64,000 nucleotides of DNA, taken from positions 124,001-188,000 of the forward strand of contig QPMI01000150.1 of the NCBI GenBank assembly GCA_004431415.1, written 5' to 3'. Shown here piece after piece: positions 19,624-53,402 of the stretch. Numbering within the stretch: position 1 is the stretch's first letter; every line of letters begins with the position of its first letter. A program made the position numbers and the translations under genes. Under the pieces are notes generated by a model that was given only the letters and a program-made list of their open reading frames with translations, ran no database searches and was not told the DNA's origin. The stretch is from Cyanophora paradoxa CCMP329 (Eukaryota; Plantae; Glaucophyta).

Positions 19624-19931
19624 CGCCTTGTGGGCGAGTCCCAGCTGCAGGCTCTCAGGGCGACTGCTGCGCGCTCGGGCCTGAACACAGCGAAGTGGGG
19701 GGGGGGGGGGGGGGGTTTAGCCCGGCCCGGCGGGTATGACCGGGCCGCGCGGGCCCCTTCGAGGGCCGTCTGAGCCGCCCTAGGCCTAGGCCTGCCTGCC
19801 TGTACTCCTTGGAAACTTATCCCCGCGAGCTGTAATTCTTGCATGCGCCGTTTTACCCCGCGCGCGCGCGCGCCTTCAGCTTCGAGTTCCTGTGGCACGT
19901 GCTGCAGCCGCGGCCCCGCGGATCAGCGTCT

Positions 19932-22900
19932 TCATGGATTCACACGGAGCGCGGGCCGGGGGAGCAAGCCGGAGCTGGAGAAGAAGTGGTGGGGCGCCTC
20001 GCCCGCGGCCCGGGCCTCCCACGCGGCGGCGAGGGGCCCCTCGAGGGCCCGGACCCACGCCCGCGTGTCGAACAGGCCGCCGCCGCGCCCCCGGGCCGCG
20101 AGGACGGCGGCGCGGGCGGCCGCGAGGGCGCCGCGGTCGCTGGCGAGGCGCGCCGCCGCGTCCTCATAGCAGCGGAGGGAGGCGCAGAGGGGCACGGCGC
20201 CCTCCAGGCCCGCCGCCCGCAGCATCGAGGCGGCCGTGCGGGAGGCGAGCGTACCCCCCGGGAGGACGACGGGGGGCAGGCCGGCCCAGAGGGCATCCAG
20301 CATCGTGCTCTGCCCGCTGAACGCGGGGGCATCGAGGAAGAGGTCGGCCGCCGCCATCCGCTCGATCTGAGGCCGAGGTCGGGTCGGGCGGGCTGGGTAG
20401 GAGAGTGACGCGGGGGGGCGCTTGGCTCACCTGATCCTGGCGGGGCACGAAGGGGGCGTAGAAGAGGCGGGGGGCGAGGTCGGCGGGGGGTACCGGGGGG
20501 CGTTGGAGGAGCTGGCCGGCGGCGGCGGACTCGAGGCGGTAGTTCCTCTCGAGGGCCTCTACCCCCGTGAAGACCCAGAGGACCGCGTTCGGCGCCCGGC
20601 GGAGGACGTTCATCCAGACGCCGAAGAGCGAGGGCGTGAGCTGCGGTGCCGGTGAGGGCCGCGGGCCGAATCGCGCTGCGGGGGTACGGACCTTCTTGGC
20701 GGGGTGGAAGGCGGCGAGGACGACGGCCTCGGGGGGTATGCGGTACAGGGAGCGGGGGATGGGGGGCGGGGGGGCGGGCAGGTCCAGGGGGCTCCCCGGC
20801 CGAACGACCTGCCGGGCGCTCGGGCCCCGGGGCCCGCCGGCCGTGCAGGGGGGTACGCGGACCGTGATGGACTCGAGGGGGGCGTGGGAGGATACGTGGA
20901 ACGAGTTGGGAGCGGGCATCAGGAGAAGCTTCTCGGTGAAGTGCGACTGGGAAGGGGTACGGAGTCAGCAGGGGGGGCGGGAATACCGGGTTTATTCAGG
21001 GGGATACCTGCATCTCGGGAGTGGACACGAACGGGTCGCCAACGAAGTGGCTGAGGTACCCGTCCGCCCCGGAAGGCCCTTCGCAACGCCGGGGTACGTC
21101 AGCCCCGGCGGGGCGGTGGGCAAGTCGGGGAGGGGGTTACCGCCGTATGATGTGTAGAAGATCTGCACCGGGGCGGGGGAGCGGGCGATGGGGTCGCAGT
21201 GGGCGTTCAGGATGAACACTGCGCGTGCGGGGGAGGGGTACGGCCGTCAGGAAGCAGAGGTGGTGCACGAGGGGGAGAGGGACGCACTGTCAAGGTAGAT
21301 CAGAACCTGAGGCGGGGGGGAGCAAAGGTGAGGCGGGGTACGCTATTCGACGGCAGGAGGGGGGTACGTGCCTGGATGCCAGCGTCGTTGACGGCCTGTG
21401 CCACGTCGCTTGGGTAGCCCGGTGCGCCCTGCGGGGGTTTCAAAAAAGGGAGGGGTACGGCGGTCCTCTAGGGGGTACGCACGACGTAGATTACGTGATC
21501 CGCGCCGCTCACGATGGCGCGCTGAGAAAAGGGGTTTGAGCGCGGGAAGGGGTCTGGGGGGGTACGCCTGCACCTGGACGGCGTCGTCGGGGCGGGGGGT
21601 ACAGAGCACGTAGAGGTAGACCTCGAAGCGGGAGCGGTCGTGCAGGCGGGGTACGTGCTGGAACACGTACCTGGGGCGGGTCAGCGGGCCCGGAGGGGGA
21701 CGATGGGCGGGTGCGGTGCGGGGCGGGGGGGGTACCCGGTGGCGTGCTCGAGGAAGAGGACGGAGGCGTAGGCGAGCTTGACGCGGCGGGGCGGGGGCAG
21801 CAGCTGCAGCGGCCGCAGCGCCGCCCCGTGCTCCATCGCTGCGCGGCGCCATGCCTTAGAGGCAAGGGAGCGGGGCGGGGGCGGGGGCGGGGTCGGGGGC
21901 GGACGGGGCGTGGAGCGGGGGCAGGCGCGGCGGCGGGCGATGGCGAGCTGCGTGCGGGGCTCCAGCGGGAGGAAGGCCGCCGCGATCGGGTCCACCTCGC
22001 TGCCGCCCCCCGCCCCCTCAGCCCTCGCTCATTCGGAAGGGAAGAGATAAAGGCTCGTTGTGAGGGAATGTATAAGAAAGGCTCTAATATAAGAATGCAT
22101 CTCATATCATGTCTCTATATGAGAAGCGGGCACTTGTTGCGGAGGCTGCCGTAGGGCTCCTCGGGGGGCGCCGGGCCGAACTCCTCCGGCGCCGGCCGGA
22201 TCAAATCCTGCCGCGCCGGAGGCGTCGGTTTGACGGGGGCGAGAGGGAGGGAGCGGGGGGGGGCGGGGGTACCTCGAGGTCGGCGAGGAGCTCGTCCCAG
22301 TAGCGCCAGGCGGCGACCTTCGCGCCGGCCGCCACTCTGCGCGCCAGCCGGAGGCCCAGCTCAGGCTCAGGTGAAATTCAGAGCTCGAAGCCAAGGCCGG
22401 GCACGTCTGGTAGAGGAAGATGTTGTGGACCTTCCGGTCCTGGTGCCGCATCCTGCCCGCCACCGCCCCGGATCAAATTCGAATTTGAGTTCGAATTCGA
22501 GTTCGAGTTCGAGTTCGATCGCTCGGACCGGAAGGCGTGGAGGGCGGCCTGGTAGGCGCGGGAGTGGTCCCCGTAGTCCAGCGCGATGCTCACCAGGTAG
22601 TAGTAGTACGGGCCCACCATCACGTCCCCTGCACGCATCGGAGTCTCAGGGGCGGCGGGGGGGGGATAAGGGGGAAGGGGCGGGCCGGCGGCCTCGGCGA
22701 TGCGGACGGCCTCCTCGGCGTCGCGGAGGGCGCCGCGGCTGTCCCGCGCCCACTGCCGCGCCAGCGCCCGCTTCGCGTAGGGCGCCGCCGCCCCCGGCTC
22801 CACCTCCGTGCCCCGCGTGTACCTGCCCCGCCCGCCCCGCCCCGCCCCCGACCCGTCGGTCGGGCCCGGCCCGCGGGGGCGCCCTCCCGTCCGGGGGCGC

Positions 22901-23374
22901 GCACCACTGCTCCGCCGTGGCGAAGTCGCGGGCGTGGAAGAAGATGTCGCCCACCTGGATCAAATTCAGACCCGAGATCAGATCCGAGGGGGCGGGCGGG
23001 CGGGCCTGGGTGGCGGCGAAGGAGCAGCTGGGGTGCATGGCGAGGGTGAGCTCGTAGGCCTCGATGGCCGCCCGCTGGTCCCCGGCCGTGAGGTAGCACT
23101 CGGCGAGGTAGAGCAGGTGCTCCAGCTTGCCCCCGCCCGCCGCCTTCTCGAAGAATGGGATCGCCGCCGCCACGCTCACGTACTTCGCGATGTTGATCCC
23201 GTACGCGCCCGCCAGCTCCGGATCGTCCGGCACCAGCGGCACCGGCGACGCCGGCTCGGCCCGGGCGAGCGTCACGAGGAGCACCAGCGCATGCATCGCC
23301 AGCACTTGTCGCATCGCGGCCCGCCCCGCTCGCCTCCCCGAGGCGCGGGGGCCTCGCCCTCGAGCCCGCATCAT
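19932..23374 (-). CDS. GT41 O-GlcNAc-transferase-like protein (TPRs + catalytic domain) with N-terminal signal peptide
   Basis: TPR-like helices; RRVKLAYASVLFLEHATG, HDRSRFEVYLY, APVQI, FTEKLLLMP, AFHPAKKLTPSLFGVWMNVLRRAPNAVLW, ADLFLDAPAFSGQSTMLDALWAGLP, LASRTAASML, LFDTRAWVRALE. Start is ATG 23374 or 23314, followed by VLAMHALVLLVTLARA|EP. Confidence 0.85.
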
Positions 23375-26672: not shown

Positions 26673-27797
26673 CGGCCCACCCACTGGAGCAGGTGCCTCT
26701 GGCCATGGCGGCGGGGGTGCGTGCCGCCGCCCGTACGCGAGCTCTGCGCGTGCTCTAGATGTGCCTCATGGCCCTAGACGTCTCAACCCGCATCGCCCCG
26801 CCGTTGCAGCCATGCCATCTGGAACCGCGGCCGCATGCATATATATGACATGCTTAAGCTTGATTGCACACGAGCGCGCGTCTGCCTGGGCGCGGTGGGA
26901 CACGAAGCGGGTCTGAGCGAAAGAAGCATGCCTCCGCGGCGTGCGTCCCGGTGCCTGCGGCAGGCGCCGGCGGATCCGATCAGGCCCATAGCTAGGGCGC
27001 GCGCGCCGGCGCCGGCGCGGAGTGTGCGAACGCGGAGCTCGCGGGCGCGGCAGCGTGGCGCTTCGCCACGCACCTATTCGTGATGTATAGCTTGGCGCCA
27101 TCCTGCGCCATCTTGGCGAACCGGCTCTCGTCGGGCCGCGGGCTGCGGCTGTAGTCAGCGCGCGCGGGTCGGGGGCGAGCCCAGATGCGAGAAAGATCAC
27201 ACCTGGCGCACTGTAAGCTTGCTCTGAGACGAACTGGAGCTACTGGAGGTCGCCCGCGCTCGAGCCCGGAACCTTCTCAGATGGGGGGCCCTGCACAAAC
27301 GCGACGGCCATTTCGCGCAGCTGACGGAGCGAGGGCTGCCATCAAACACAGAGCTAGAGTGCTTGACTATCTAAACTTTGTCGGAAGCACTTTGAAAATC
27401 GTCGGGCTAGTTTTCGCGCACGCTTTCCTTGAAGGCGATCGAGTTTGACCAGACTCTTGGTTTTCGTCGCGGCGGTGCCCGAAGGCGGCCGTTCCTGCTC
27501 CATATGCGACCTGGAGGCTAGCTGTGACGCTCTCTGCTGCGTGCGGAAGCTGCGGTGCGTGCTGGTCGCGCGCTTCGCCGAGTCGCGTACGTCTACCCCG
27601 GGTGTTTTAACTTTTGTAGGGGAGAATTATTCGAGTCCCAAGTCGAGTCCCAGCCAAGTCGAATTGCGGGGACCGACTTTTTTTCGCGAGCTGTGGCAGC
27701 TGCGATGTTTCGCCATCTCTATCCCGTACCCCAAATTCCGCAACCCAGTCGACAGGCTCGCGACGTACTTTGAACGTCATCGCGCGTGTGGCCGGTC

Positions 27798-30700
27798 ATG
27801 GCCGGCGTCGGCCGCCAGATCTCACCTCTGTCACCAGATTTAAGCAGCAGCAGCATCCAGCACTTGCACAACCACGCAGCCGACATGGGAAGCGGGCCGC
27901 CAGCACTCGCTCCCGCCGCCGCAGCGCCCGTCCTCATGGTGCAGCAGGTGATCATGCGCGCGGAAGCTTCAGCTGCTTTTTAGTAGCTTATGCACGCGCG
28001 CGCGCGCGCGCGCGGGGCCGTGCCTGACCTGTGCTCGCATGCGCAGAACATACCCCGCAGCAGCTCCACGCCCTACTGCGTCGAGCAGGCGCTCGATCAG
28101 CCGCCCTCTAAGCTCGCGGATGTTGATCTCAAGGCATTCGCCGGCGCGGGCCACGCCGGCGAGCACATGCACTCACGCGTGGCCCCGCGGCGCTCCCTGG
28201 CCGTCGCGAGCCCCATCCAGGCGAGCGCGCCCGGGCCGCGCGCCTCGCACGCGGCCGGCTGACTGCGCACAGGTGGTCTTCAAAGACGTGCGCTACTCGG
28301 TGAAGGTGGCGCAGCGGGGCGTGAAGGGCCGGGTGGAGAAGCAGATCCTTCGCGGCTGCACGGGCGTCCTCCAGCCCGGCCGCCTCTGCGGCATCCTCGG
28401 CAGCAGCGGCGCCGGAAAGACCACGTGCGCTGCCCGCTGCCCGCCCGCGCCCCGCCCCGCCCCTCCCCTCTGACCGCTGGCCCGCCCCGTGCAGACTCCT
28501 CAAGTGCGCCGCCGCCGCCGCCCTTGCGTCGCGCGCGCGGGGGCGGGGCCGGGGCTGACGTGAGGCGGGCAGCCTGCTTGCGGGGCAGGTGGACTTCGCG
28601 GCGGGGAGCGTGCTCCTCAACGGGGAGCCCGTGACGCCCTCCTTCATGCGCCGCGTCTCCGGCTTCGTCTTCCAGGGCGCGCCCCGCCCGCCGGCCCCGC
28701 CCCGGCCCGCCAAGCCGCTGAGAGGCGTTGCAGACGACGTGATCCTGGAGACGATGACGGTGCGCGAGGCGCTGGCGATGAGCGCCCAGCTCCGCCTCCC
28801 GCCCGAGATGTCCCCCGCCGGCAGGCGGTGCGGCCCCGCCCCGCCGCCCCTCTCCTCCCGCCCCGGGTCGCTGAGCCGCCCCGCCGCAGGGCGCGCGTCG
28901 ACGAGATCCTCTCCGTCCTCCACCTCGAGCACGTGCGCTCGAACCCCGCTGGGACCCTTTCCGTCCGGGGCCGACGGCCCGGGCCCGCAGGCCGCCGACA
29001 CGATCGTGGGCTCGAGCACGAACAAGGGCATTTCGGGGGGCGAGCGCAAGCGCGCCGCGTGCGGCATGGAGGCGCGAACCCCCCAGCTGCCCCGCCCCCC
29101 CCCCCTCCCCCCACGGGGCTCACGTACCCCCCAGATGATCGTGAACCCCGGCATCCTCTTCCTCGACGAGCCAACGAGCGGGCTCGGTGCGGCCGCGCAC
29201 GCGGCGACCCGCCCCCCTCTCGGGCGCCGCCTCACTAGCGGGCGGGCGGCAGACACCTTCACGGCGACGTCGATCATGGAGACGCTCAAGGGCCTCGCCG
29301 CCTCGGGCCGCACCATCGCGGCCACGCTGCACCAGCCCTCCTCCGAGATCTTCCACATGTCCGCCCGCCCCCACCGGGCTCGGTCGCACCCCCCTTGACC
29401 TTCTGCCCCCCCTTTGATGAACCAGGTTCGACGACCTGATGATCATGGCGCACGGGCGGATCCTCTACTTCGGCCCCGCGGCCGAGTCAGTCCCGCACTT
29501 CGCGGCGCTGGGGTACCCCTGCCCCACGTACACGAACCCCGCCGACCACTTCTTCATGCGCCTCCTCAACGCCCGCCCCGCCCTGCCGCCCGCCCCGGGC
29601 GCGGACGTCGACTTGGAGGCCGGGGAGGGCGCCCCGCGGCCCCCGGCGACGCCCGCGCCCCCCGGTGACACCGCCCGCGTCGAGGCCCTCCTCGACGGGT
29701 GCGGTACCCCCCTCCGCCCCGCCGCCGTCCGCGCACCCCCCTCAAAGCGGCGCAGGTGGCCGCAGACGGCGCTCGGGGCGGCGATGACGAAGGCGGCGGA
29801 GACGCCGGCGGCCGGGGGCGTGCGGGCCGGGCAGGTGCAGCAGCACGCGCGCCTCGCCACGCAGTTCGAGGTCCTCACCAAGCGCGGTGCGCGACCCGGC
29901 CCGTCCAGCCCCGCCCGGAGCCGAGAAGCGACCTGGTGCTTACCGCTCCGCGCGGCGCGCAGCCCTGCGCAACGTTCTGCGGAACAAGCTCATCCTGCGC
30001 GCCAAGCTCGCCCAGACGGTGCGGGAACGTTATCCTCCTCCTCACCGCCCCCGCCTGAACTCCCCCCCTCCCCGCAGCTGTTCATGGCGCTGCTGTGCGG
30101 GCTGATCTACCTGCGGGTGGGGACGGACCAGTACTCCATACAGAACCGCAACGGGGCCCTCTTCTTCATGTGCGCCGCCGCCGCCGCCCCGCCCCGCCCC
30201 GCCCCGCCCTGCCCCCCTCACGCCCGACGCAGCACGACGAGCTCGGTGATGAGCGCGATCATGGGCATCCTCTCCGTCTTCGACGCCGAGAAGGCCGTCT
30301 TCAGGCCCGCCCGCCCGCCCCTCCCCGCCCCCCCCTCTCCGGGGCTGAGGTCCGCGGTGCGGCAGGCGGGAGCACGCGCAGGGGATGTACGGGGCGGGCT
30401 CCTTCTTCCTCTCCCGCGTCGCCGTGGACCTCCCCTTCCAGATCGCCCTCCCCTGGCTCTTCGCCACCGTCACATGTACGCGCCCCCGCGCCCCGCCCCG
30501 CCCCGCCGCCCCGCCCCGTGTCTCTGACGCCGCCGAGCAGACTGGATGATCGGGCTGCAGGCGAGCACGGAGCGCTACTTCGTCTACTCCTGCGTCGTCG
30601 TCCTCATGACCCTCTCGTCCGTTCTGCTGCCCCCTGCACCCCCCGCCCCTTCTGACGGGCCGGGCAGGGGCCAGGCGCTGGGCATCTTCATCGCGGCGGT

Positions 30701-31334
30701 CTCGCCCCAGCTCGAGCTCGGCCTCATGGCCGCCCCCATGCTCATCATGCCCCTCATGATCTTTTCCGGCTTCATGGTCGTGCGTGTACCCCCCCTCCGC
30801 TGACGCGGCCATCGTACCCCGGCCGACGGGGTGCGCGTGGCGCAGAGCAACGCGGGCATCCCCGTCTACTTCGACTGGATCAAGTACATCAGCCCCATGA
30901 AGGTGCGGTACCCCCCTTCATCTCTCCCCCCCGCGAACTGAATCTCCCCCCCCCCCAGTACGGGTACGAGGCGCTGCTGAAGAACGAGTACACGGGCCTG
31001 ACGGGCCTCACGTGCGAGCCGGGCAAGGCGCGTCGTCTCTCTCCTCCGGCCCCGCCGAGTCTCCGGGCCGCTGACTCGGCTGGAACCGCAGGGGGCGTGC
31101 ATGGCGCGCTCGGGGCGCGGGGAGGAGATCATCACGGCGCTCGGCATGGACGACGTGCGCCGCGCTCGCAGCCCTCCGCCGTTTGCGCAGCCTCGGAGGG
31201 ACCTGACCGAGGGGGGGCGGGGGCAGGGGATCGTGCTGGGGTACTGCATCCTGGCGCTGCTGGGGATGACGGCCCTCTTCCTGGGCCTCGCCTACGCCGC
31301 CCTCCTCCGCGTCGTCCGCAAGCCCCGCGCCTAG
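27798..31334 (+). CDS. ABCG (White-like) half-size ABC transporter, 22 exons / 21 introns
   Basis: Fully spliced by hand: Walker A GSSGAGKTTLLNLLAG, FVFQDD, signature ISGGERKR, Walker B ILFLDEPTSGLD, H-loop TLHQPS, NPADHF, six-TM C-terminal domain (FRREHAQGMY, IPVYFDWIKYISPMKYGYEALLKNEY). Confidence 0.95.
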
Positions 31335-31699
31335 CCGCCCGGGGCCCCCGGCCCGCCGCGGCCGCTGCTAGATCCCGCTTCTTAACTTATTCAGGGCCGC
31401 GTTATTGTAGGTCTAGCTATAGCTTAGTTTACGTAGCTATAGATTCGATTAGATTCAATTATATATGAGCGCTAGTATCGCAGGTACATGTACAGTACTA
31501 TAGCTAGCGTAAAGGTAGAGCTTATATTATGATCTGGAGCTCGCGATCGATCATTATCAAGAGTGCCAGAGTGCTTATTGACTTTTCTATGAATTGCATT
31601 TACATGAATTAAGATTTGAATGCGAACCGGTCCAGAGAATTCAAATCGAATGTGCGACCATCAGAGCTTTGGAGAATGCTAATCACGATGTCGGGCGCG

Positions 31700-34252
31700 C
31701 TACGGGCTCCAGAGGCCGAGCCCCAGGCCCGGCGTCGGCGCCGCGCCCTCCAGATCGAGGCCCCCGGGCTCCGGGTCCGGCGGCGCGCCGGCCCCTTGCG
31801 GGGGCCCGAGGGCGGGGTCGAGGGGGAGGAGCTCGGGCAGGCCCAGCCCGAAGAGGGAGAAGGGCGGCGAGAGGAGCTCGCCCGGCAGCGCTAGCGGCGG
31901 CACCGCCCCGTCCGCTTCGGAGCGGGCCCCGGCAGACGGCGCCGGGGCGAAGAACTCGAAGGTGGGCGCGTGGAGGCCCCCGAAGTCCAGGGGCGGCGCG
32001 GCGTCCGGGTCCGGGTCCGGAGGCGTCGCCACCGGCGCCGGCGACGGCGCCTGCGAGAGCGCCGGCGGCGTCCGCTGCTCCTGCAGGAAGTGCGCCAGCT
32101 GCGGGGGGTACAGTGAGCGGCGCCGGGGCAGCGAGGGTGGGGGGTACGCGCCTCCCTCGCGACGGCCTGGCGGATGAGGTCCCGTAGCAGATCGGGGGGT
32201 ACCCCCGCCCCCGCCGGCGCGGGGGCGGAGGCCGCAGCAGGCGCGCCCGACGGCGGCGCGTGCGGCGCCCGATCGGGCTCCGAGTCCGCGGCGCGCTTCC
32301 GTTGTGCTGGCCCCGGCGCCTGCACCGGTGTTCCGGAGCGAAGGACGGGAGGAGAGGGCAAGGGCGAGGCGGCGGCGGGTGCGGGAACGGGGGTACGGAG
32401 GGCAGGGGACGGGCCGCCCGGGGTAGAGGGCACGGGGGCGAAAGGGTTACGGGCGGGTGCCGCGGGCGGCGGCGGGGGCGGGGTCGGCCGGGCAGCGTAG
32501 GCGCTCTCCTTCTTGAGGCCCGCGGGAGGCACCGGCGCCGGCGCCGGAGCGGCTGGCGCGGAGAGGTCGAGCCTGTAGCCGATGAAGCGGTCCTGCAGCA
32601 TCGGCAGGTGCCTGCCGCCACCGCCGCGCGCGCGCACGGGCGGTAGTCAGCAGGCCGGCCGGACAGGCAGAAGGGCGCGAGAAAGGGAATGAAACAAGGA
32701 GCGCACGCATCGTTCCAGGCCACGCGTCCGGCCATCTGCGCGGGGCGGGGCGGGACGGTCAGAGGCGGAGGGGGCGCGGGACCCGCCCCGGCCCCGGCAT
32801 GCGGGCGGGCCTGCTCGGGGCGGAAGATGCCGAGGGCGAGGGGGTTGCAGGCGTAGTGGAACCACGCGTCGTCCACCTCGACCTCCCCACCCAGCGCCTG
32901 CCGGGGGCGAGGGGCGTGAGACGGGGCGTGCAGCAGCAGCAGGGGCAGGGGAAGGCAGGGCGCCGCACGATTGCCTGCTCGATGAGGACTGCGCGCGGGG
33001 GGCGCCGCAGCGCCGCGGGGCGCGCCGGCGTCAGTCTTTGGGGAAGGAGAGGAGGGGGGGGGGGGGGGGGGGGGGGGAATGGGCGCGCACGCCGGAGGCG
33101 CCGGCGTCTGTCGAGGACCTGGGCGCAGCGCTCGCGTGAGCCCGGCGGGCACAGGGGAGCGGGGGGGGGGAAGCGCTGCGCCTTCTCGAAGCGGTCGGCG
33201 TTGGCGGAGAGGAAGCGGCGGAACTCCTGCGGGCGGCGCTGGGCCCGGGGGCGGCGCGGGCGGGAGGGCCGGGCCCCGCGCACCTTGCGGTCCTCCGGCA
33301 AGACGTGGCCCGGCGCCCCCGCCGGCGGCTGCAGCCGGAGGCTCTGAGAGGCGCGCCCCCGGGGGCGGGGGGGGGGGCAATGAGTGGGGGTACCGTCTCG
33401 AACATGTGGTAGATCTCCCGTTCGACCGGATCTTCGGGCTCGGCTGCCGGTGGCGCCCTTCGATCTCGAGGCGGGCGCGGAGGGGGCGTGCGCACGCTTG
33501 CCCGCCTCGCTCACGCGCAGCCAGGTCAGCAACACAGACCTGGCGAGGGCGTCAGCGCGGGGGACAGGACCTGCGAAAAGCCAAGGGACTGGGGCGCGCA
33601 ATAAGATCTCCTGCGCGCCGGGCACGCGTGAGCGCGGCGCCGCGCGCCGGTCGGGCGGGCGCGGGCGGGGGGCGGGGCGGCGCGCCGAGTGCGCGATGGG
33701 GGGTATGATGTGCTTGAGCTCCCTTATGAGGTGCGTGGCCGTCGCCGTCGCGCTGCGGCGCGCTGCACCGCTGTTCAGAGCCGCGGGGCGGGGGCGCGGG
33801 GGAGGAGGGGCAGGCGCGCGCGCCTTCCAGAACCCGCTGGATGCTTGGCAGGAGGGCGTTCGGGAGGCTCTTGTTCAGGTGATCGATGGCCGTCCGCTGC
33901 GCACGCGCGGCGCCGACGAGCTCAGCCGGAGCCGCGACGGGCGGGGCGGGGCGGGGCGCTCGCCATGCTCGCGCGGAAGTCGTCCATTGCGTGGTTCACG
34001 TTCAAGTGGGTCCCCGCCAGCTTCTGCCGCATCTGCTCCAGCTCCTGCAGGAACCACCCGCCGTCAAAGGCTCCGCGGCCGGCTGCGAGTTGGGCGCCGG
34101 CGCCGGCGCACCTCTTTCAGCTGCGCATTCTCCACCGCCAGCGCGCGCTCGTTCGCCTTCTTTCGCTCTCTGAAGCGCCTGCTCGCCTCCTTGCTCTTCT
34201 CTTTCTTGCCGTCCACGTTCACGCGCCCGGGCGTGTCGTCGCCGCTGGTCAT
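31700..34252 (-). CDS. bZIP-like transcription factor with Pro/acidic C-terminus (multi-exon)
   Basis: MTSGDD...KKEKSKEASRRFRERKKANERALAVENAQLKE|FLQELEQMRQKL gives a basic region plus heptad zipper. Last exon is Pro/Asp/Leu-rich (activation-domain-like). Confidence 0.65.
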
Positions 34253-44899: not shown

Positions 44900-45020
44900 T
44901 TTACAGCTAGCGCTGTGCACATATAGAAGAAACTTCAACGAATTTAACGCAGTTGAATTCGCATGGCTTGCGATTGCGCATGCGGGGGTTCGGGCCGGGG
45001 CAGGCCAAGGAGAGCGGACA

Positions 45021-45658
45021 GGATGGAGAGCTAGCGACGGGGCGCGCGGGAAGGGGCCCCCCGGGGGGAGGGGGGAAGGGAGGGGGAGGGGAGGGGGGGG
45101 GGCGGGGAGGGCCGGGGAGGGGGTTGGTGGAGGAGGGAGAGCCAGAGGGCTATGGTGGCATGGGGCGCGTCAGAACGGGCGCCACGCGCGCGGATTCGAG
45201 ATCTAGAAGTGTAGATGCTACCCTGATCATGATTATGAGGGCCCTCCCAGCTGCAGCCTGGGAACGATTTGCATTATAATTACGCGGCGCTCTTTCATCA
45301 CCTTCGTGATCCCGCACTAATTCTACCTGGTCCCACTCCGCGTAGGCCTTAGGCTTGCAGCGGGAGGCCCACGTCCGACGGTCGTGTGAGCCTGCTCGCC
45401 ATATCGGTGAGGCCCGGCGGCCCGCAGGCCCAGCCTGGCAGCTGCAGCCTGCTAGCCGCCGCGGCGCTGAACCTGCCAGAGGCTGACCAGCCCCCTATTC
45501 AAAGCTAGCCCACGCTCCCCCAGCCCTCAGGGCCTCGCGGTCGCCTTCTCCTGCCGCAGCACTGCGGCACTAGTGCGCCCCATCCCCCGACCCCCCCCCG
45601 ACCCCCCCCCCCCCCCCCGCCCCCCCCCCTTCCCACTGGGCCAGAGCTCGTCCATTCC
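45021..45658. mobile_element. Possible degenerate foldback/MITE-like element (G-rich left arm, C-rich right arm)
   Basis: Left arm GGATGGAGAGCT...GGGAAGGGG(G-run)...ATGGGGCGC mirrors the reverse complement of the right arm, GGAATGGACGAGCT...GGGAAGGGG(G-run)...ATGGGGCGC. No TSD identified. Confidence 0.3.
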
Positions 45659-46014
45659 CTCGACCTCGAGCTCGAGCGCCTCGCTCATGATCTCATGATC
45701 ATCAATTCCCTGGACGTCGCCTCAAACTCCTCCCTCCGAGGCTCTCTTCTACGTCCGGCCGATCCGCGCCGCTGGAAACAGCGTTTGTTTTTGCGCCGCT
45801 GGAAACAGCGGCGCGTACGCGTACACGTGGGAAGGGGGGACATACGATCTGTTTTTCTTTTATCTCCTCGAGCTCCCTCTAGATCTCGTGCTTCTCTTTC
45901 TTTTGGAGCGAAAATTAAGAGAAAATTAAAAGTTTCCGAGAAAGGAGGGAATTTAAAGCTTCGACATTCTAGCTATAGATCTCCCATCGATCTATCCTCA
46001 TCGGCGACACGCGA

Positions 46015-49000
46015 ATGCCGCGCGGGCGCTCTGGTTGCAGCGCCACCGGCCATGGCCAGAAGTCGAAGAGCTCCTTCTGCGCCTGCTGTATGCGCAAAAA
46101 GCTTTTGAATCTGAGTCCGGATTCTTCGACGGCGCATTCGGCGGGTGGCGATGCCGAAGCACATCACAACGAGGCTCTGCAGCTGCGACTGGCGTTGCTT
46201 ATGTGCGACCTTGTGGATGAAGGCGCTCCCTCTCCGCACTTTCATACGGATCCGGAGGCGCACCTCGACCGGGACGAGATTTACGAGCTCTGGGGCGTGA
46301 AGCCCGCAAAGGAGTCTCTCGAAGCGTTCTTGCGCATCATTGGCCTTGCGGCGCGCGGAAAAGAGGACGAGGCGTTCGCCTCCATCGAGGTTCGCGCCAA
46401 TCAAATTTGAAATATTAATCGCTTTGGTTTTTGGCGCGCACTGTTATTTAATCATGCCCAGGATTCGGTGCTTCGAAGTCCAGAAGGCGAGTGCATTCGT
46501 GCAAACGTCGAGGCGCTCGTTTATCGTCTTGTTTCGCTGGCCTTTCGGGATCATTCCATCGGGCTGCTGTCGGACGTGATGCTTGGAGCCAAAACGAGCG
46601 GCATGGCGCGTCGCCTGCATGCCTTCAATGTCATCGCGAGATCGCGAATGTTATTAATACCCTTTTGCAGCGCGGATTAATCTGTGCGCACGAAGAGTTC
46701 GGAGAGGACAGCGTCGAGCACGGGCAGGCGATCATCAACTGTGCTGGGTTTCTTGACAAGCTTGCTTCAGCGGAGGTAAATATCTATGCGCATCCGGATC
46801 CAGTTCGAGTACCTCGCAACTTCTACTTATGAGCGGATTCGATTGCGCAAACGTTTCCCTCGCCAGGAATTGAAACTCGATAACGACGCGCGTGGAGAGG
46901 CTCGAGAGGAATTGCGCGCGAAGGCGCGGAGCAATTACAAGGTACTTTCAAGTTCATTTGCTCGCGATCGTTTTCAAGCAGATCTAGACGTCGATCATTA
47001 CGTATACGTATACATAAATCGAATTGTTCTCGTAGCTTATTTCTAAGTGACTTATTTCTGGATACAGGAAGCCATCAGCATCTTGGAAAAAGATCAAAGT
47101 CAAGGGTTGCATGTGCAGCACAGCCTTGTTCTGGCGTTAGTAGGCGCGGGCGGCTTCGCTCGCGGTGATTCGTACAGCTGGTGCGGAGTTCATGAATCTT
47201 GCTATTGGTGCGCATCGCATCTAGATCTAGATCTGAGCTTTGCAAGTCCTAGATCGAATATTTGACGCTTTCGCTTTTGCAGGGCGTTGAAAGAGTTTCT
47301 TGATCCCAAACGGCGCATGCAGCTCCAGTCCGGAGCCCGCGAAATTTCGTTGGACGAGTATGGGGCGACACTCAGCTATCTTCAGGCACGCACTGAACTT
47401 AAATTCATGAAAATCGAATAGAACCCACCCACGCGTATGAGCCTATTATAATTAAGCTTGAACACGCACGTGTACGTATGCCTATACCTTCCGGATCTGC
47501 GCAGCGCGCTCTGCAGATTATTGAATCCCAATCGTCGACGTGCAAGCTTTTCGATCACGAGCGGGTCGTCGTGCTTCTCGACATTGCGCTTTCCCATGCC
47601 GAGGCGCGGCAACTCCCTCTGGCAATCCAGACAACCGAGGTGCGCCGGGTGTTTGCAGCTGCGCAAGCGGGCTTGCTGCATGCTGGTGTTCATTTAATTT
47701 GCGACTCGCGCCCGACGTCGCAGCGGGTGTTGGAGATGTGCATGCAGCGATTCGAGCAAAGGAGGATTAGCGGGGACGAAATTGTCGTTGAGTGGAGACT
47801 ACTTGTGCGAAGCTCTCCAGAACATTCGTTTTATTATTTATCGTGGGTTGCAATTGTTTTGAGGAATCGATCCGCAGATGGAAATTGCATTTCACTACAC
47901 GAATATCCTTGTCGATTCGGGACTCTTCTCCAGCCCGACTTTAGCGCCCATTCTCGAGGCAGGCCTATGTAATAAGAATGAGAGCTGGTGCGTAGAGCTA
48001 ATGTGGAGGCTCACCGGCCCGCAGGTATTGGAATATGTGGCAGACCTCTACCGGGAGAAGAATTCGCTTGGCGATTTGCGCGATCGGCGTGTACCTGCAT
48101 ATGCATACTCGGACCACATTGATCACGAGACACGATCGAGACGAATTGAACGCTTACGCGATAATCTAGCATTGTGCAGGCGAGCTAGCGCTTCGTTCAG
48201 TCGACGTCTCGGAGCTCGAACTTTATGATTCCGATCTCATGATCAACCGGCATGTGCACGTCTCTGACGTACGCGTCCACGCTCGAATTCACGCGCAGGC
48301 TGGGTTCTCAGGCTGTTCTCCGCGCCACTTTGCGCCCTTGCGTCACACGTGCGGATGCTTCAATTATTTATTATAGCATATATTTGTATACGTGAGAATT
48401 CCGTGCCGGCACCTGCCGGCCGCGGTCACGATACATTGAACAGCATTGACGTTCATGATCAGGCAATGGCCCGGAGCAGCAGCTTAATGACGACAGAGAA
48501 GTCTCACGGCTGCTTCAAGCAAAGAAGCTGGATCATCGCGTCATGAGCCAAATCAAACCATGGCTGGAGAAGACAGAGGCTGAAAAGCAGCGTCGAAATG
48601 CCGAAATGCGGCGCCAGGAGGATGTGGCGAGGAGCCAAGCAGCCCACGCCCACCTCGTCTCTCTTTGTGCTATTTGCGCCGATTCACAGGTTCGCAGGCT
48701 CAGTTGCGCTGCTATGAATATTGTTGCCTCATTAATTTCGCCTTCGGAATTCGTTGATTACCTGCTGCACCCGCAGCCTGGTTCGCACACATCTGTATCA
48801 GAGGCCGAACTTGCGAAGGCGGTGGCGAATGCAGCCCGCGCCGGCCTCGGGGGATCGCAGGCCTTGGTCGAGGCGAACGCTCACCTGCAGACAATGCAGC
48901 GCCGGCGGGAGGCCACACAGAGACTCGAGGCGGCACTCTCAGCTGCGGACGGGGAGGCGAGCTCCGGGCCGGCGGAGGCCGCCCGGGCTCTCTCCGCAGC

Positions 49001-51049
49001 TGTGCAAGGGGCGGAGGAAAGCGGGGCCAGCAGTGCGTCTCCCCTCGTGCAGCGTGCCGTGGCGCGGCTCGCGGTCCTCCAGGAGGCGGTTCGTTATCAA
49101 CGCTCAACGATGCCGAATTCTAGATCTGCGATGCAGAGGTTTCTAACGCATGCCCAGGTCGGCGCTGTGGCGGCGGCCGAGTCGTCCATTCGAGACATCG
49201 AGCTGGCCACCTCCAGCTCGCCATCGAGTAGTATTTCCCTGTCACCATCCGCCGGCGAAGTCGCGGAGAATGCGGCGCGGACGTTAGCGTCAACGGGTTT
49301 CGCAGCTTTGGTTCGTCATTGCTTTAGGATTCGCTATTAAATTGAAAAACGTTAACGGAATTTCTGGAATTTTATGCTCACATACACTCAGGCTGCAGAT
49401 CTAGATGTGAGGGCTCGACTCACCCAAGCGATTTCCTGGAGTCTCGCAGTCGCAGAGGTCTGTGAAGCAGCTGCGGCTGCAGCTGCAGCTGCGCATGCTG
49501 ATGCAGTTCATGTATTATGGATTATCCAGCTGCCGCGATATCGATGTTAAACATTTGCCGGAACATTGCAGTTAATGCGCCGTTTAATTCTCGCAGGTGG
49601 CGACGGCTTCTGCCAGCAGCAGCGTATTGCAGCTGCGCGAGGCGGTCAAGGCGCTGGAGGCTCTGGGGGCTTCCAGCTCCCCGGGGGGCCAGATCTCCGC
49701 CGCCCGCCTGGCGCAGCTGAGCAGCGCTCGCGCGGTATGTATGCATTAATATTCCTATATCGCAATTCTTCGATCGCGAAATTGGCTTTTAGAATTCTAC
49801 CGCTATAGCTACTTATTAAACGGACAGGAGCTCGAAAAGAACGTGCAGGCAGCCCGGGAGCGAGGGCGGGCGGCGCTGCGGGAGGGGACGGATCCGGAGG
49901 CGGCGGCGGGGGCGGCGCTGGCGGAGGCGATCGCCGCGGGGGACGCCGAGCTCCGCCGCGAGTGCGAGGCCCGCCTGAAGAGCCTGAAGCTCGAGGCGCG
50001 CCTGGACCGATCCGGATCCCGCTCTGCATCAATATTAATGCGCATGCGGTGTATTTGACATGGCTTTGACACATATGCATCATCAGCAGGCGAGATCGAC
50101 CTCGAAGGACCGCACGATCGCTTCTACGGGCGATGGGTCGGCGACCTTCGCTACGGAGTCCCCAGAGTGGGAGGTGAGGCAGAAATTGGATTATATATAA
50201 TTAGTGCGCGTGTTCGAAGTGTCTGCCTTGTGATTTTGGATGTTTGCCGTAGGAGGCCATGGCGTGCAGGCCGGAGCGGGCGGTTCTCATCAGCGGGGCG
50301 ACGACAGAGGCTATTTCGCGGGTCCTCCTTGAAGCAAACCGTAGCGCGGTGAGCTCGACCAATCCGATATAGCAGCAGTGACTTGGATGAACGTTAACGC
50401 CTCTAGCGCCGCTTATCATTATCGAGCTCCCGCGAAATCGGCTAATTGGATGCGCTCGCTTCAGACGCTGGAGGCAGTCGTCCCTGGCGCAGCGCTAGCG
50501 GGCGGGAAGCCGAGGGCGCTGGCGGTTTTCGCAACCGCCGACGCGGCGCGTGCGGCAGCGGCCCTCCTGCCCGCCTCCGTGGCCTGCAGCTGCACGGCGG
50601 TGCTCCTCGGGGAGCTTGCGCCCGTCCAGACGCGAGCCGCGGGGCCTTCGAAGCAGCCAGCGCCGACGCCTCGGCCCAAGAATTCGAAGAAGCGAACGAA
50701 GCAAGGGCGATATTCGCTCCGCGAGTTCCTTTCCATTCCCCTCCCTGCTGCCGGTCGCGAGGATCCTGGGGGCTCGAGCCGGGAGTCGAACATTGGCGCA
50801 GGCGTGCGCTCGGACGTCGACGATCGGCATCCCGAGCTCGAGGCACCCGAAATTCAGGTCGAGAGTACCGAGGCGCAGCCCTCGCTCGAGCTCGCGCCCT
50901 GCGTCTCGCCATGGAGGAGCCCAGCGGGGCGGCCCGGCAGCCCGCGGCCAGCAGAGCGGCCGGCAGCGCTGCCCGCGGCTGCCAGCGGAACAGACGCGGA
51001 CGCCGACGCGGAGGAGGCTGCTCTCCTGGAAGCCCTTCTGCAGTGGTGA
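46015..51049 (+). CDS. Large unknown helical-repeat (TPR-like) / coiled-coil protein with RRM-like C-terminal segment; AT-richer introns
   Basis: Exons such as EAISILEKD, RALQIIESQ...VLLDIALSHAEARQLPLAIQTTE|RVLEMCMQRF, EAEKQRRNAEMRRQE, RAVLISG...RALAVFATADAARAAA; stop at 51049. Start and single-gene status uncertain. Confidence 0.5.
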
Positions 51050-51521
51050 AATCGCGGTGCCGATCGATCATCGGAAAGCGAGCCCCAAGCAAAGTCTTCA
51101 GTTTTGCTTTCTTAAATTGGCCCGTTAACAATAGATATCGATATCGATTGATCCAAGTGCAATTTCAAACGGTGATTTACTCATGCACTCATGACTGTTC
51201 AGTAAATTCCTAGCTATAGGCCTGTTTTATAATTACAGAAGCAAGGATTTAAGCTTCTTAATATCGTGAGGCGCACTACGAGTTATTCGTAATCTCTAAT
51301 TCACGGGAGCCGTGGCCCGAGGGGAACCGGGAGCCCGCAGTTCGAATTCAGTCGAAAATAGGGGAGAAGCCCTGAAAAGGCTTGCAGCAGGTGGGACACC
51401 TCTTGGACATCTCAGCGTGTTCCTGGGCGCAGTGTAGACAGAAGACGTGGCCACAGCCCAGGAGGAGTCGCCGCTCCCCGTGGTCCTTGTCCTCCAAGCA
51501 GATCTGCATGCGCAGGGTAGA

Positions 51522-52950
51522 TCACAACTGCAGATCATCCAATTCCGAGAAGAGACTGAAAGGGCGCACGGGGCACTCATATGTTTCTTCAAGCTCAAGG
51601 CGCCTTCGCTTGACGCGCCTCTCGATCCGATCGACTAGACGATCCTCCATTTGCGTCAAAACCTGGCCCCAATCTTTCATTGCGCATTTAAAGAAGTCCT
51701 CGCAGGATGCAAGCTGTTCAGCTACGTGCCGATGAATTGTTTCCAGCCGTCCAACTTCTAGATCTCCCTCCAATGCTGCAGTCTGCAAGTTCACATGCTG
51801 AACAATGCTTGGAAGCGAGGAAGTCGAATTTGATAGCTCAGATGGCTGTAAAGCTTGCGACGTCGACTGATCACGAGGAGCCATTGAAGGGTGTATATGT
51901 TGCAGTTGTGGACGTCCTGGTGATTGAAGACCGTGCACAGGAAATGTTGATGCGGTTGCCAAGCTTGAGTCTGCAGCTGTCGGTGCCGGAGCAGCAGGAG
52001 ATGTGGCGGTGTGCATATTCGAATTCCGCCGCTGCATAACTTCCAACACAAAACTGATCTGCGCAAAAGGGCCCGGAAACATGAGCAGTAGATCGAAGAG
52101 GTTTCGCATCGCAAGTTCCGAAAACTCACAAGATCTTGCATCTTTCCCAGTGCCGACATTGCAGGAATTTGATGAGGAGAGTTCGAGTAATTGGTTTGAA
52201 TCACTCTGACCTGTGGATTTAATTAATTAGGTTTATGTAAGTTAGCAAGTGCAGAGCCCGAGCTTGCTGCATGGGGAAATTAAAAGATCGGCGCACGTAA
52301 AACCGTATCTCTTCACGGGCTTTTTCTCCTTTTTTGATTTGATCTTGGAGTTGCAGATCTGGTGAATGAGGCGGCAGCAGCTGGTATTGGTTCAGGAGGC
52401 TCTCCTGTACGTGTAAAGGATGTAAGCAGCTGCAGATAGATCAGATGAGCAGAATTTCGAGAGGTATACACACAATCCAGCTCTGCACAGCTGCCTGTGC
52501 CTCGAAAATCTTTCCTTGGGCCTGAATCTCCATTATCTGCGAATAGTGTGCCGCAGTGCGCAAGCATGCATGTTAATGGATGGATAAATCAAATACGAGC
52601 CCGAGATCTAGAAAACTGAAAGATCTAGCCACAGCTATAGTGAAAATATTATAATTAATGGATCAAGGCAAGAATCGAAGAGAGGACTGGGGATCTCATA
52701 CCTTGGCAAGGCTATGCTGGCGTTCATCATCTGATGTAGCAAGATCCAGCTGTAGAGTACATGCACCGGCGCTGTACATAAGAATGTTGCTCGCGATCGC
52801 TGCTCTGGTGCCGGAGGCCTGAGCTTGAGCATGCATCTGAGAGCCAGTCGCGATCGCTGGATCCGGAGCATGCATATGGAAGAGTCCGGTTGATGGCAAT
52901 ATTGTATTGTGAGCACGAGAGGTCTTCGGCTTGTTCGAATTCTGCTCCAT
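51522..52950 (-). CDS. Unknown protein (low-GC, multi-exon, Gln/Ser-rich, C-terminal coiled coil)
   Basis: MEQNSNKPK... first exon; long terminal ORF 51522-52109 (...LTQMEDRLVDRIERRVKRRRLELEETY...); intervening AT-rich introns. Confidence 0.45.
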
Positions 52951-53086
52951 AAGTACTAATGTCGACTTGACGCGCACGTCAACAAGTCAACTGAGGGCTA
53001 ATTTGCAGGCAAGAATGACCGAGGAGTGTCTCGCAGCCGCTTTATAGGCCGGGCTTTTTTCTCAGATTTCGGCCCAACTGTTTTTC

Positions 53087-53155
53087 GAGTCCTAGGAGCC
53101 AGCAATTTGGAGTCGTAGGAGCCAAGTCCTAGGAGGCACACACATCTTAGGAGGC
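53087..53155. repeat. Four short direct repeats of a TCCTAGGAG-like motif in a divergent intergenic region
   Basis: GAGTCCTAGGAGCC (53087), GAGTCGTAGGAGCC (53110), AAGTCCTAGGAGGC (53124), ATCTTAGGAGGC (53144). Confidence 0.6.
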
Positions 53156-53402
53156 ATTTGGAAGCAACGAAGCGCAAGGAAGCGCAAGAAAGAGCGTGCA
53201 CGACATCACGCGGCGCTATTACGTCGTAAATCTAGCGCAAGGGGGAGCGTTCGTGAACTTTTAAAGAGGCCCCGGCCTATTCTTAGTAAGCTGGGGTACA
53301 CTTCAAGATCCGAGGGCCGGGTACAGTCGCGGCCAAGTCAACGAGCCGCTAGCCGATTTCGGGCAAGCAGGCCTGCGCAGGAGCGCTTCGCCCGCGCCGC
53401 GG

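Follow-up and report, generated by a model that had tools for sequence, protein, structure and literature searches.

GYGCG Donors and Frequent GC-AG Introns in the Glaucophyte Cyanophora paradoxa

Introduction

The textbook donor (5′ splice site) reads GTAAGT or GTRAGT. Among the Mamiellophyceae, Ostreococcus has the donor GTGCGTG and Micromonas has AG/GTGCGT and AG/GYGCGT (a slash marks the exon–intron boundary here and below), with 53% GC donors in IE-A1 introner elements, and the branch site is (GA)CTGAC(G) (PMC2483917, PMC3879977, bioRxiv 10.1101/2022.06.08.495308). The U1 of Micromonas and Thecamonas is standard despite C at +4, and in Mastigamoeba balamuthi, where donors read GUGCGC, U1 is compensated to ACGUAC (bioRxiv 10.1101/2022.06.08.495308). 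Compensation of U1 to atypical donors is described for Entamoeba as well as Mastigamoeba. In Emiliania huxleyi, GC donors begin 56–65% of introns, so that the majority are GC-AG (PMC4028052). Elsewhere the class is small, with GC-AG introns accounting for ∼1% of those of animals and plants, where they carry compensatory signals (PMC3167603). Across 240 yeast and outgroup species, preference at +4 shifts without snRNA change, and in Saccharomycotina a switch from +4A to +4U is associated with the loss of METTL16 or SNRNP27K while snRNAs are unchanged (PMC10581693).

The published Cyanophora genome has 67.6% GC, 9.2 introns per gene, and a mean intron size of 86 bp. Its BRAKER1/Augustus gene models need curation by the account of the genome paper itself, which does not mention splice-site usage, and our literature search found no account of Cyanophora splice sites or snRNAs. 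Here we analyze a 64-kb stretch of the Cyanophora paradoxa genome (the window), for which a reading of the sequence had proposed a nonstandard donor code. The departure from GTRAGT stands. Its novelty does not, as the same donors have been published in other protists; the Cyanophora pattern is no new code and is already known from a few of them.

An Intron-Dense Transporter Gene and Its Neighbor

The introns under study lie in two convergent genes.

27798..31334, plus strand: ABCG-type (NBD-TMD) half-transporter gene; 22 exons, 21 introns, 727 codons
28495..28503, plus strand: 9-nt microexon of this gene that completes the Walker-A region (...GKTT-LLN-LLAG), placed by sequence reading and frame
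32099..33495, minus strand: convergent neighbor gene with six RNA-supported introns; joints in X1 and X2

Removal of the 21 introns from the first gene leaves 2184 nt in frame, with a single stop at the end. Pfam was run on single exons, and short exons fell mostly below the gathering cutoff, with one reaching it. The matches are collinear, exon by exon, with ABC_tran (4–25) and ABC2_membrane_7 (11–54) followed by ABC2_membrane in the order 29–57, 83–118, and 146–181. The gene thus has the N-terminal ABC ATPase domain and subsequent ABC-2 membrane domain of an ABCG (White-type) half-transporter, and the model protein carries Walker A (GAGKT), the SGG signature (residue 256), and LFLDEPT (residue 276). 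Intron density is high, at 21 introns in 3.5 kb. Flanking RNA contig pieces leave space for the unplaced letters of the microexon.

Transcript support came from RNA-like contigs of three studies (X1, X2, and X8), with a DNA-like run (X17) for contrast; 6 kb were covered. The introns of the transporter gene, all on the plus strand, are as follows.

27948..28046: intron 1, cag/GTGATC...GCGCAG, 99 nt, with a (GC)n run; frame, and contig pieces break off at 27943 and resume at 28043 (4-nt GCAG ambiguity)
28221..28272: intron 2, cag/GCGAGC...CACAG, GC-AG, 52 nt; X1 record 1 joins 28217 to 28270
28425..28494: intron 3, GTGCGC, 70 nt; frame and an unbroken Walker A, with an X1 piece ending at 28424
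28504..28572: intron 4, GTGCGC, 69 nt; X2 record 16 piece starts at 28573, frame
28677..28733: intron 5, agg/GCGCGC, GC-AG, 57 nt; X2 record 16 joins 28675 to 28733
28828..28889: intron 6, GTGCGG, 62 nt; joint in X1, X2, and X8, not in DNA-like X17
28933..28990: intron 7, GTGCGC, 58 nt; joint in X1, X2, and X8
29072..29134: intron 8, gag/GCGCGA, GC-AG, 63 nt; frame only, no RNA joint among the matches listed
29187..29252: intron 9, GTGCGG, 66 nt; frame only
29359..29425: intron 10, GTCCGC, 67 nt; X8 record 22 joins 29358 to 29426
29699..29755: intron 11, GTGCGG, 57 nt; X2 record 17 joins 29697 to 29755, GT..AG at shift +1
29887..29962: intron 12, GTGCGC, 76 nt; contig pieces end at 29885 (1-nt ambiguity), frame
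30019..30077: intron 13, GTGCGG, 59 nt; frame only
30170..30232: intron 14, GTGCGC, 63 nt; frame only
30305..30365: intron 15, cag/GCCCGC, GC-AG, 61 nt; X1 and X2 pieces start at 30363 (3-nt CAG ambiguity), frame
30476..30540: intron 16, GTACGC, 65 nt; X8 record 23 joins 30475 to 30541
30617..30667: intron 17, GTCCGT, 51 nt; joint in X2 and X8
30780..30845: intron 18, GTGCGT, 66 nt; X2 record 18 piece ends at 30779, frame
30903..30958: intron 19, GTGCGG, 56 nt; joint in X1, X2, and X8
31028..31091: intron 20, aag/GCGCGT, GC-AG, 64 nt; joint in X1, X2, and X8
31155..31226: intron 21, GTGCGC, 72 nt; joint in X1, X2, and X8

Those of the neighbor gene are on the minus strand.

32099..32151: gag/GCGCGT, GC-AG
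32898..32968: GTGCGG
33119..33181: aag/GCGCAG, GC-AG
33227..33283: GTGCGC
33329..33393: GTACCC
33444..33495: GTGCGC

Eleven of the 21 transporter junctions, three of them GC-AG, are seen directly in X1, X2, and X8, and the ends of contig pieces agree with six further introns (1, 3, 4, 12, 15, and 18). Over both genes, 17 junctions are spliced in the RNA-like contigs and none in the DNA-like run, which is collinear through the introns, that is, unspliced. When all equivalent cut positions were re-derived for the junctions seen, GY..AG readings alone remained, and at five junctions (28221, 28677, and 31028 on the plus strand and 32099 and 33119 on the minus strand) a GT-AG reading is impossible and only GC..AG is left. 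The gene model could in principle be wrong, with true junctions at nearby GT donors or with GC introns retained. For four introns, at 29072 (GC), 29187, 30019, and 30170, the support among the matches listed is the reading frame alone. One of these, intron 8, separates the exon with the SGG signature from that with LFLDEPT, and its retention would add 21 residues between them. However, 11 junctions are direct in contigs of three studies, three GC-AG junctions are without a GT alternative among equivalent cuts, and the DNA-like run is unspliced. At the junctions seen, this possibility is refuted, and overall an artifact of this kind is almost certainly not the explanation.

Donor Composition and Selection at +4

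Within the frame-consistent model, the 21 donor hexamers are exactly those of the original prediction, and a recount upheld its figures of +4C in 19 of 21 and +5G in 20 of 21. The five GC donors it placed at 28221, 28677, 29072, 30305, and 31028 are likewise confirmed, three of them as RNA junctions. For statistics, the 21 introns were combined with the six RNA-supported introns of the neighbor gene. In this set of 27, G+1 is invariant, +2 is U in ∼74% and C in ∼26% (GC donors 7/27), and G at +3, C at +4, and G at +5 occur in 22, 25, and 24 introns, respectively. The share of GC-AG introns is hence ∼25% (5/21 in the transporter gene, 7/27 with the neighbor), as had been claimed, and not ∼1%.

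Preference at +4 exceeds what nucleotide composition provides, again in agreement with the earlier claim. From the C content of intron interiors, the expected frequency of +4C is 0.54, against 25 of 27 observed (binomial P = 1.5e-5). In the G_G context, 19 of 20 donors have +4C versus 0.47 expected (P = 6e-6), and at unused GT and GC sites of the same gene the frequency is 0.47 and 0.43. G is absent from +4 (0/27 vs. a background of 0.27), and the two residues other than C are both A, with no U. Position +4 carries 0.73 bits over background. In contrast, +6 carries 0.02 bits, and the final C of the proposed GY-N-CG-C motif has to be given up as composition only.

GC donors differ from GT donors in the exon. 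An AG/ exon end precedes six of the seven GC donors but only three of the 20 GT donors (Fisher P = 0.0017), a stronger consensus elsewhere in the donor that matches the compensation known for the GC-AG class. Because GC donors are compensated in this way, selection is acting on donors.

We next to these results set a purely compositional account, in which +4C and GC donors are chance outcomes at unconstrained positions of introns with 70–85% GC. Intron interiors are 54% C, +6 and the positions beyond equal background exactly, the excess at +4 is just 0.73 bits, and the authors of the Emiliania study ascribe its GC donors to genome GC content (PMC4028052). The account is nonetheless quite unlikely, given the excess of +4C, the absence of +4G, the low +4C at unused sites, and the compensation of GC donors. 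+4C is selected beyond composition.

The pattern extends beyond the two genes. A gene finder blind to positions +3 to +8 was run across the window and used for enrichment statistics only. A first version, based on GY..AG and coding potential alone, was too inaccurate (13/21 and 0/6 test introns exact); with a CAG acceptor, a branch motif, and a minimum length added, 18–20 of 21 and 2–4 of 6 were exact. The predicted share of GC-AG introns depended strongly on the GT prior, lying anywhere between 29% and 55%, and was not used as a percentage. In other genes, GTGCGC ranks first among predicted donors, and GCGCGC ranks second or in the top five, depending on the setting. Predicted donors match [GCA]CG at +3 to +5 in 37–44% of cases, compared with 11% for GY sites that are not used (P = 1e-16 to 1e-25), and GTGCG occurs 113 times in sense and 51 times in antisense orientation in predicted genes. 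The trend in AG/ exon ends was the same in this noisy set (8/24 vs. 4/34; P = 0.06). Pfam searches of long ORFs and of short exons of an OGT-like gene gave few matches, the exons being too short, and ORFs of the low-GC stretch at 45–53 kb gave no match to Pfam. With C at +4 and G at +3 and +5 in the 27 introns and enrichment across the window, the donors belong to the atypical +4C/GYGCGY class. The donor G-[U/C]-G-C-G is confirmed as real in the very GC-rich C. paradoxa.

Branch Site, Acceptor, and Intron Type

All 27 introns have G[T/C]...AG termini and are short (51–99 nt, median of 63). A CTGAC or CTCAC branch motif is present in 15 and CT[G/C]A[A/G] in five more, and the median distance to the 3′ splice site is 17 nt; CUSAC lies 10–21 nt before a GCAG acceptor, and there is no consistent pyrimidine tract. 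The acceptor has G at −4 in 22 of 27 and C at −3 in 27 of 27. By their termini, branch motif, and removal from RNA, these are genuine U2-type introns of the major spliceosome. A U12-type identity (RTATCCTT donor, TCCTTAAC branch site) was rejected, as none of the 27 donors resembles RTATCCTT. A predicted minus-strand intron at 20947–21007 with a GTATCC-like donor has a CTGAC branch site and lacks TCCTTAAC, and is not U12-type either.

The acceptor suggests another reading of +4C, namely that UGC at +2 to +4 pairs with GCA at −4 to −2 and thereby helps to define very short introns in which a pyrimidine tract is missing. Each of +4C and −4G is unusual, the two bases are complementary to each other, and the mean contiguous pairing run is 2.5. 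But pairing within introns hardly differs from that of re-paired donors and acceptors (2.48 vs. 2.28; P = 0.10), no signal appears at +5/−5 or beyond, and exceptions do not covary, which makes such pairing very unlikely. It is highly improbable that the motif was inherited with a family of mobile introns rather than selected. There is precedent in Micromonas, where IE-A1 introners have 53% GC donors and share AG/GYGCGT within the GYGCGT-type IE-A elements. Low-complexity C-runs aside, however, the Cyanophora intron interiors are about as similar to one another as shuffled sequences are (mean local score of 18.7 vs. 16.9; maximum of 47 vs. 43), and no family emerges.

How the Donors May Be Read

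The original prediction held that +4 is read by U1 and U6, and this position does face position 5 of U1 and, in the ACAGA box of U6, the central A (PMC10581693). C at +4 would pair with neither a standard U1 (ACUUAC) nor a standard U6 (ACAGA), which counts against standard machinery. Because +4C is near fixation and +4G, which could wobble with U1 position 5, is absent, the preference would then be left unexplained by base pairing. No snRNA gene was found in the window with Rfam (gathering threshold and E ≤ 1), a weak SNORD49-like match being the only one.

Several indirect observations nonetheless speak rather for standard machinery. At GC donors, positions −2/−1 compensate, G+5 is kept, and the branch site is standard; residues at +4 other than C are only A, which standard U1 and U6 would prefer; and in Micromonas and Thecamonas, which also have +4C, U1 has stayed standard. 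For these reasons we favor the view that standard U1, U5, and U6 probably read the GYGCG donors, in short introns of a GC-rich, intron-dense alga. G+1, G+3 (by wobble), and G+5 would pair with U1, and the C in the ACAGA box of U6 would be a further partner of G+5. C at +2 would lose the pair with U1 A7, and the AG/ exon end, pairing with U1 and U5, may make up for the loss. A strong branch site and short length would then allow splicing by intron definition. +4C would be a lineage-specific preference, of a kind that may have evolved several times in lineages that are GC-rich or derived in other ways, and GC-biased drift at the weakly paired +4 probably contributes on top of selection.

There is a small chance that Cyanophora instead reads +4C through changed machinery, be it U1 with G5 (ACGUAC) or a changed U6 ACAGA box, m6A, or SNRNP27K state. 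On the U1 side, G for U at position 5 (ACGUAC not ACUUAC) would give +4C a Watson–Crick pair, as reported for M. balamuthi, which has the same GUGCGC consensus and an unpaired +6C. Selection of +4C beyond composition, the absence of +4G, and the uninformative +6C fit such a change. It is unlikely, in that U1 is standard in Micromonas (GYGCGY) as well as in Thecamonas (+4C), and both non-C donors here have +4A whereas none has +4U, the wobble partner of G5. On the U6 side, +4C could be favored by a change in the ACAGA box, such as G for the central A, or by a different U6 m6A, METTL16, or SNRNP27K state. The methylated central A faces position +4, preference at +4 in yeasts varies with the status of METTL16 and SNRNP27K (PMC10581693), and the U6 of C. 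merolae has an A-to-U change at the central-A position. Yet the ACAGA box is invariant in 240 species despite switches at +4 (PMC10581693), and the known m6A-linked switch is from A to U, not to C; we regard this route as quite improbable. If changed machinery were nevertheless true, Cyanophora would add a second case, independent of the first, of coevolution between snRNA and splice site, this time in an intron-dense archaeplastid, and would contrast with the sister lineage Micromonas, which has the same donor uncompensated.

Implications and Comparison with Known Systems

GC content and intron statistics here agree with the published figures for the Cyanophora genome. Because about one-fourth of introns start with GC and the donor is unlike GTRAGT, these intron-dense genes will be mis-modeled by predictors whose training relied on canonical sites. 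G-Y-G-C-G donors are now present in green algae, an amoebozoan, an apusomonad, and a glaucophyte, and U1 is compensated in one of the earlier lineages but uncompensated in two. The U1 and U6 of Cyanophora are thus a further data point on coevolution of cis-signals and snRNAs. With thousands of introns in the species, selection per site is expected to be weak and a change of machinery costly. If METTL16 is present, the absence of a +4A preference would test the association of METTL16 with +4A outside fungi.

The Mamiellophyceae are alike in their GC-rich genomes, G-Y-G-C-G donors with +4C and +5G, frequent GC donors, CTGAC-type branch site, and U2-type introns. They differ in being intron-poor, with a highly constrained extended consensus that keeps T at +6 and with GC donors tied to introner elements, whereas Cyanophora is an intron-dense glaucophyte in which +6 is free and introns show no family similarity. 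With Mastigamoeba it shares GUGCGC as commonest hexamer, an unpaired +6C, and richness in introns; Mastigamoeba, however, is an amoebozoan whose U1 change has been shown, and the text consulted reports no high GC-AG share there. Emiliania huxleyi is also a GC-rich alga (65% GC) in which GC donors are a major class, the acceptor is AG, and standard predictors mis-model genes, but its GC share is ∼60% versus ∼26% in the Cyanophora introns analyzed here, and the likeness is drawn on the +2 class only. As in GC-AG introns of animals and plants, the lost +2 pair is offset elsewhere, in Cyanophora by the AG/ exon end (6/7 vs. 3/20), although the class is ∼25-fold commoner here and the remaining donor is GCG, not AAG. 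Saccharomycotina, finally, offer a parallel in a lineage-wide change of preference at +4, which faces position 5 of U1 and, in U6 ACAGA, the central A, with the difference that A gave way to U there and C is preferred in Cyanophora.

Gene Structure

The window, with a GC content of ~68%, GC-rich gene bodies and AT-richer spacers, fits the published figures for the Cyanophora genome (67.6% GC, with introns averaging 86 bp and numbering 9.2 per gene). The ABC gene (27798-31334, +) is an ABCG-type half-transporter gene. Once its 21 short introns are taken out, the gene reads as a 2184-nt frame of 727 codons with one terminal stop, in which GAGKT, SGG, and LFLDEPT are all present. Exons queried singly against Pfam gave collinear matches to ABC_tran (profile 4-25), ABC2_membrane_7 (11-54), and ABC2_membrane (29-57, 83-118, 146-181). 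The donor hexamers listed in the original prediction matched ours exactly at all 21 introns, and its counts of +4C (19/21), +5G (20/21), and GC donors (5/21) are reproduced from the frame model.

28495-28503, + strand: 9-nt microexon, completes the ...GKTT-LLN-LLAG stretch of the ABC gene

This microexon encodes LLN of the conserved GKTTLLNLLAG after Walker A and has GTGCGC introns on both sides. It is likely to be overlooked by gene finders; the first run of a donor-blind one swallowed it within a single 154-nt intron. At 99 nt, intron 1 is longer than any other in the gene and also the least typical; it has the donor GTGATC and contains a (GC)n dinucleotide run of ~20 nt (27990-28015). An antisense ORF of 409 codons with an ATG start (28129-29358, -) is open across exons and introns; it probably arises from the high GC content and is of the same kind as the bidirectional ORFs discussed in the Cyanophora genome paper.

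RNA Evidence for Splice Junctions

Contigs of four public runs (X1, X2, X8, and X17) were aligned to 27700-33699 (6,000 letters). Those of X1, X2, and X8, which come from three different studies, skip introns and therefore behave as RNA; those of X17 (a 2012 run) are DNA-like, continuous through introns with none of the joints present. Eleven junctions of the ABC gene are visible outright in the RNA-like contigs. When every cut position yielding the same spliced product was enumerated, each had a single GY..AG reading, and at 28221, 28677, and 31028 only GC-AG fits. Six further introns, including the GC-AG intron at 30305, fit the ends of contig pieces, allowing for placement of ambiguous letters downstream by the aligner. 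Introns 29072 (GC), 29187, 30019, and 30170 are predicted from the reading frame, with no joint among the contig rows listed. The convergent minus-strand neighbor adds six RNA-supported introns (donors GCGCGT, GTGCGG, GCGCAG, GTGCGC, GTACCC, and GTGCGC), and the RNA-supported GC-AG share is 5/17.

One X2 contig (record 19, 2531 nt; 31227-32610) extends from the final exon of the ABC gene across its 3' UTR into the convergent gene, skipping a minus-strand GC-AG intron at 32099-32151. The pair thus seems to share sequence at the 3' ends, an arrangement that the Cyanophora genome paper reports for many genes. In intron 4, a short CCG-rich stretch (28506-28524) has high depth and many chimeric or foreign contig ends (loose ends and back-joints; X1 and X2), which we take to be a low-complexity repeat effect and not a splice event.

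Splice-Site Composition

Statistics cover 27 well-supported introns, with intron interior (C 54%, G 27%) as background. Donors begin with GC in 7 of 27 (26%); +3 is G in 22, +5 is G in 24, and +4 is C in 25 (p = 1.5e-5 versus 54% interior C) and never G. Within a G_G context, +4C occurs in 19/20 versus 0.47 expected (p = 6e-6), and at GT and GC dinucleotides of the gene not serving as donors its frequency is 0.47 and 0.43, respectively. The donor observation is real and RNA-supported. In the proposed GY-N-CG-C motif, the final C reflects nothing but composition, because +6 is uninformative (0.02 bits).

All 21 acceptors of the ABC gene are CAG; across the 27 introns, -3 is always C and -4 is G in 22 (GCAG). 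A branch motif (CTGAC or CTCAC) is found in 15/27 introns, its median distance to the 3' splice site being 17 nt, and 11/27 branch-to-acceptor tails are under half pyrimidine. We also tested the introns as one sequence family, which was unsupported (no family formed), and UGC/GCA complementarity of intron ends, likewise unsupported, with pairing within introns no better than between re-paired ends.

Donor Pattern across the Window

Since RNA evidence covered only 6 kb, a small gene finder was written that uses coding potential, intron composition, the CAG acceptor, and the branch motif and is blind to +3..+8. On test introns 18-20/21 and 2-4/6 were exact, and given this limited accuracy it was used for enrichment only; no GC-AG percentage is taken from it because the value varies between 29% and 55% according to the prior. 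Among the remaining predicted genes, GTGCGC ranks first as donor hexamer (20-36 of 168-181), and GCGCGC ranks second or within the top five, depending on settings. The pattern [GCA]CG at +3..+5 is present in 37-44% of predicted donors, compared with 11% of GY dinucleotides in these genes that do not act as donors (p = 1e-16 to 1e-25), and GTGCG counts are 113 sense versus 51 antisense.

TPR matches lie at the 5' end of an O-GlcNAc-transferase-like gene (19853-23296, -), whose last large exon matches Glyco_transf_41 (E = 7e-17). Donors of its ~17-18 predicted introns seem more varied (GTGCCC, GTACCC, GTGAGC, GTATCC, GCCCGC), with +4C still frequent and +5G less so. Elsewhere, a SNORD49 box C/D snoRNA-like match (1668-1742, -) is weak (23.9 bits, E = 0.25, under the gathering score), and 45000-53400 is lower in GC (53-59%), with ORFs of up to 265 codons that have no Pfam match and no gene from the GC-trained gene finder.

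Recognition by U1 and U6

G+5 is the pairing partner of C4 in U1 and, in U6, of the C in the ACAGA box. Standard snRNAs favor A at +4; for G5 U1, U is second best. The introns here retain G+5 and a standard branch site. Both +4 exceptions in the ABC gene are A (GTGATC and GCGAGC), which is weak evidence against G5 U1. Exons end in AG at 6/7 GC donors versus 3/20 GT donors (p = 0.0017), with a similar trend for GC donors in the noisy predicted set (p = 0.06). Stronger matches elsewhere are a known compensation at GC donors (PMC3167603), and the AG exon end is of this kind, which argues for ordinary U1 and U5 contacts on the exon side. The +4 position faces nucleotide 5 in U1 and, in U6, the central A of ACAGA (PMC10581693); because C pairs with neither, the near fixation of +4C and lack of +4G are unexplained by standard pairing. 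A search of the window for snRNA genes found none. On indirect evidence, we consider standard splicing machinery probable, and the rewired U1/U6 suggested by the original prediction less likely, indeed rather improbable.

Comparison with Known Systems

Donor usage is not mentioned in the Cyanophora genome paper. The closest precedent for the pattern is in a preprint (bioRxiv 10.1101/2022.06.08.495308), where Mastigamoeba balamuthi prefers GUGCGC at donors and has U1 = ACGUAC, and where U1 is standard in Micromonas CCMP1545 and Thecamonas (+4C). In Saccharomycotina, +4 switches with U1 and U6 invariant (PMC10581693). Altered U1 thus has one precedent, the compensated Mastigamoeba, against several counter-precedents in Micromonas, Thecamonas, and Saccharomycotina. 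Ostreococcus has an "atypical consensus GTGCGTG", for which its authors already asked about an snRNA change (PMC2483917); Micromonas has AG|GTGCGT, and introners with AG|GYGCGT and 53% GC donors (PMC3879977); and in Emiliania, GC donors reach 56-65% (PMC4028052). The glaucophyte pattern joins this already described G-Y-G-C-G donor class with abundant GC-AG introns.
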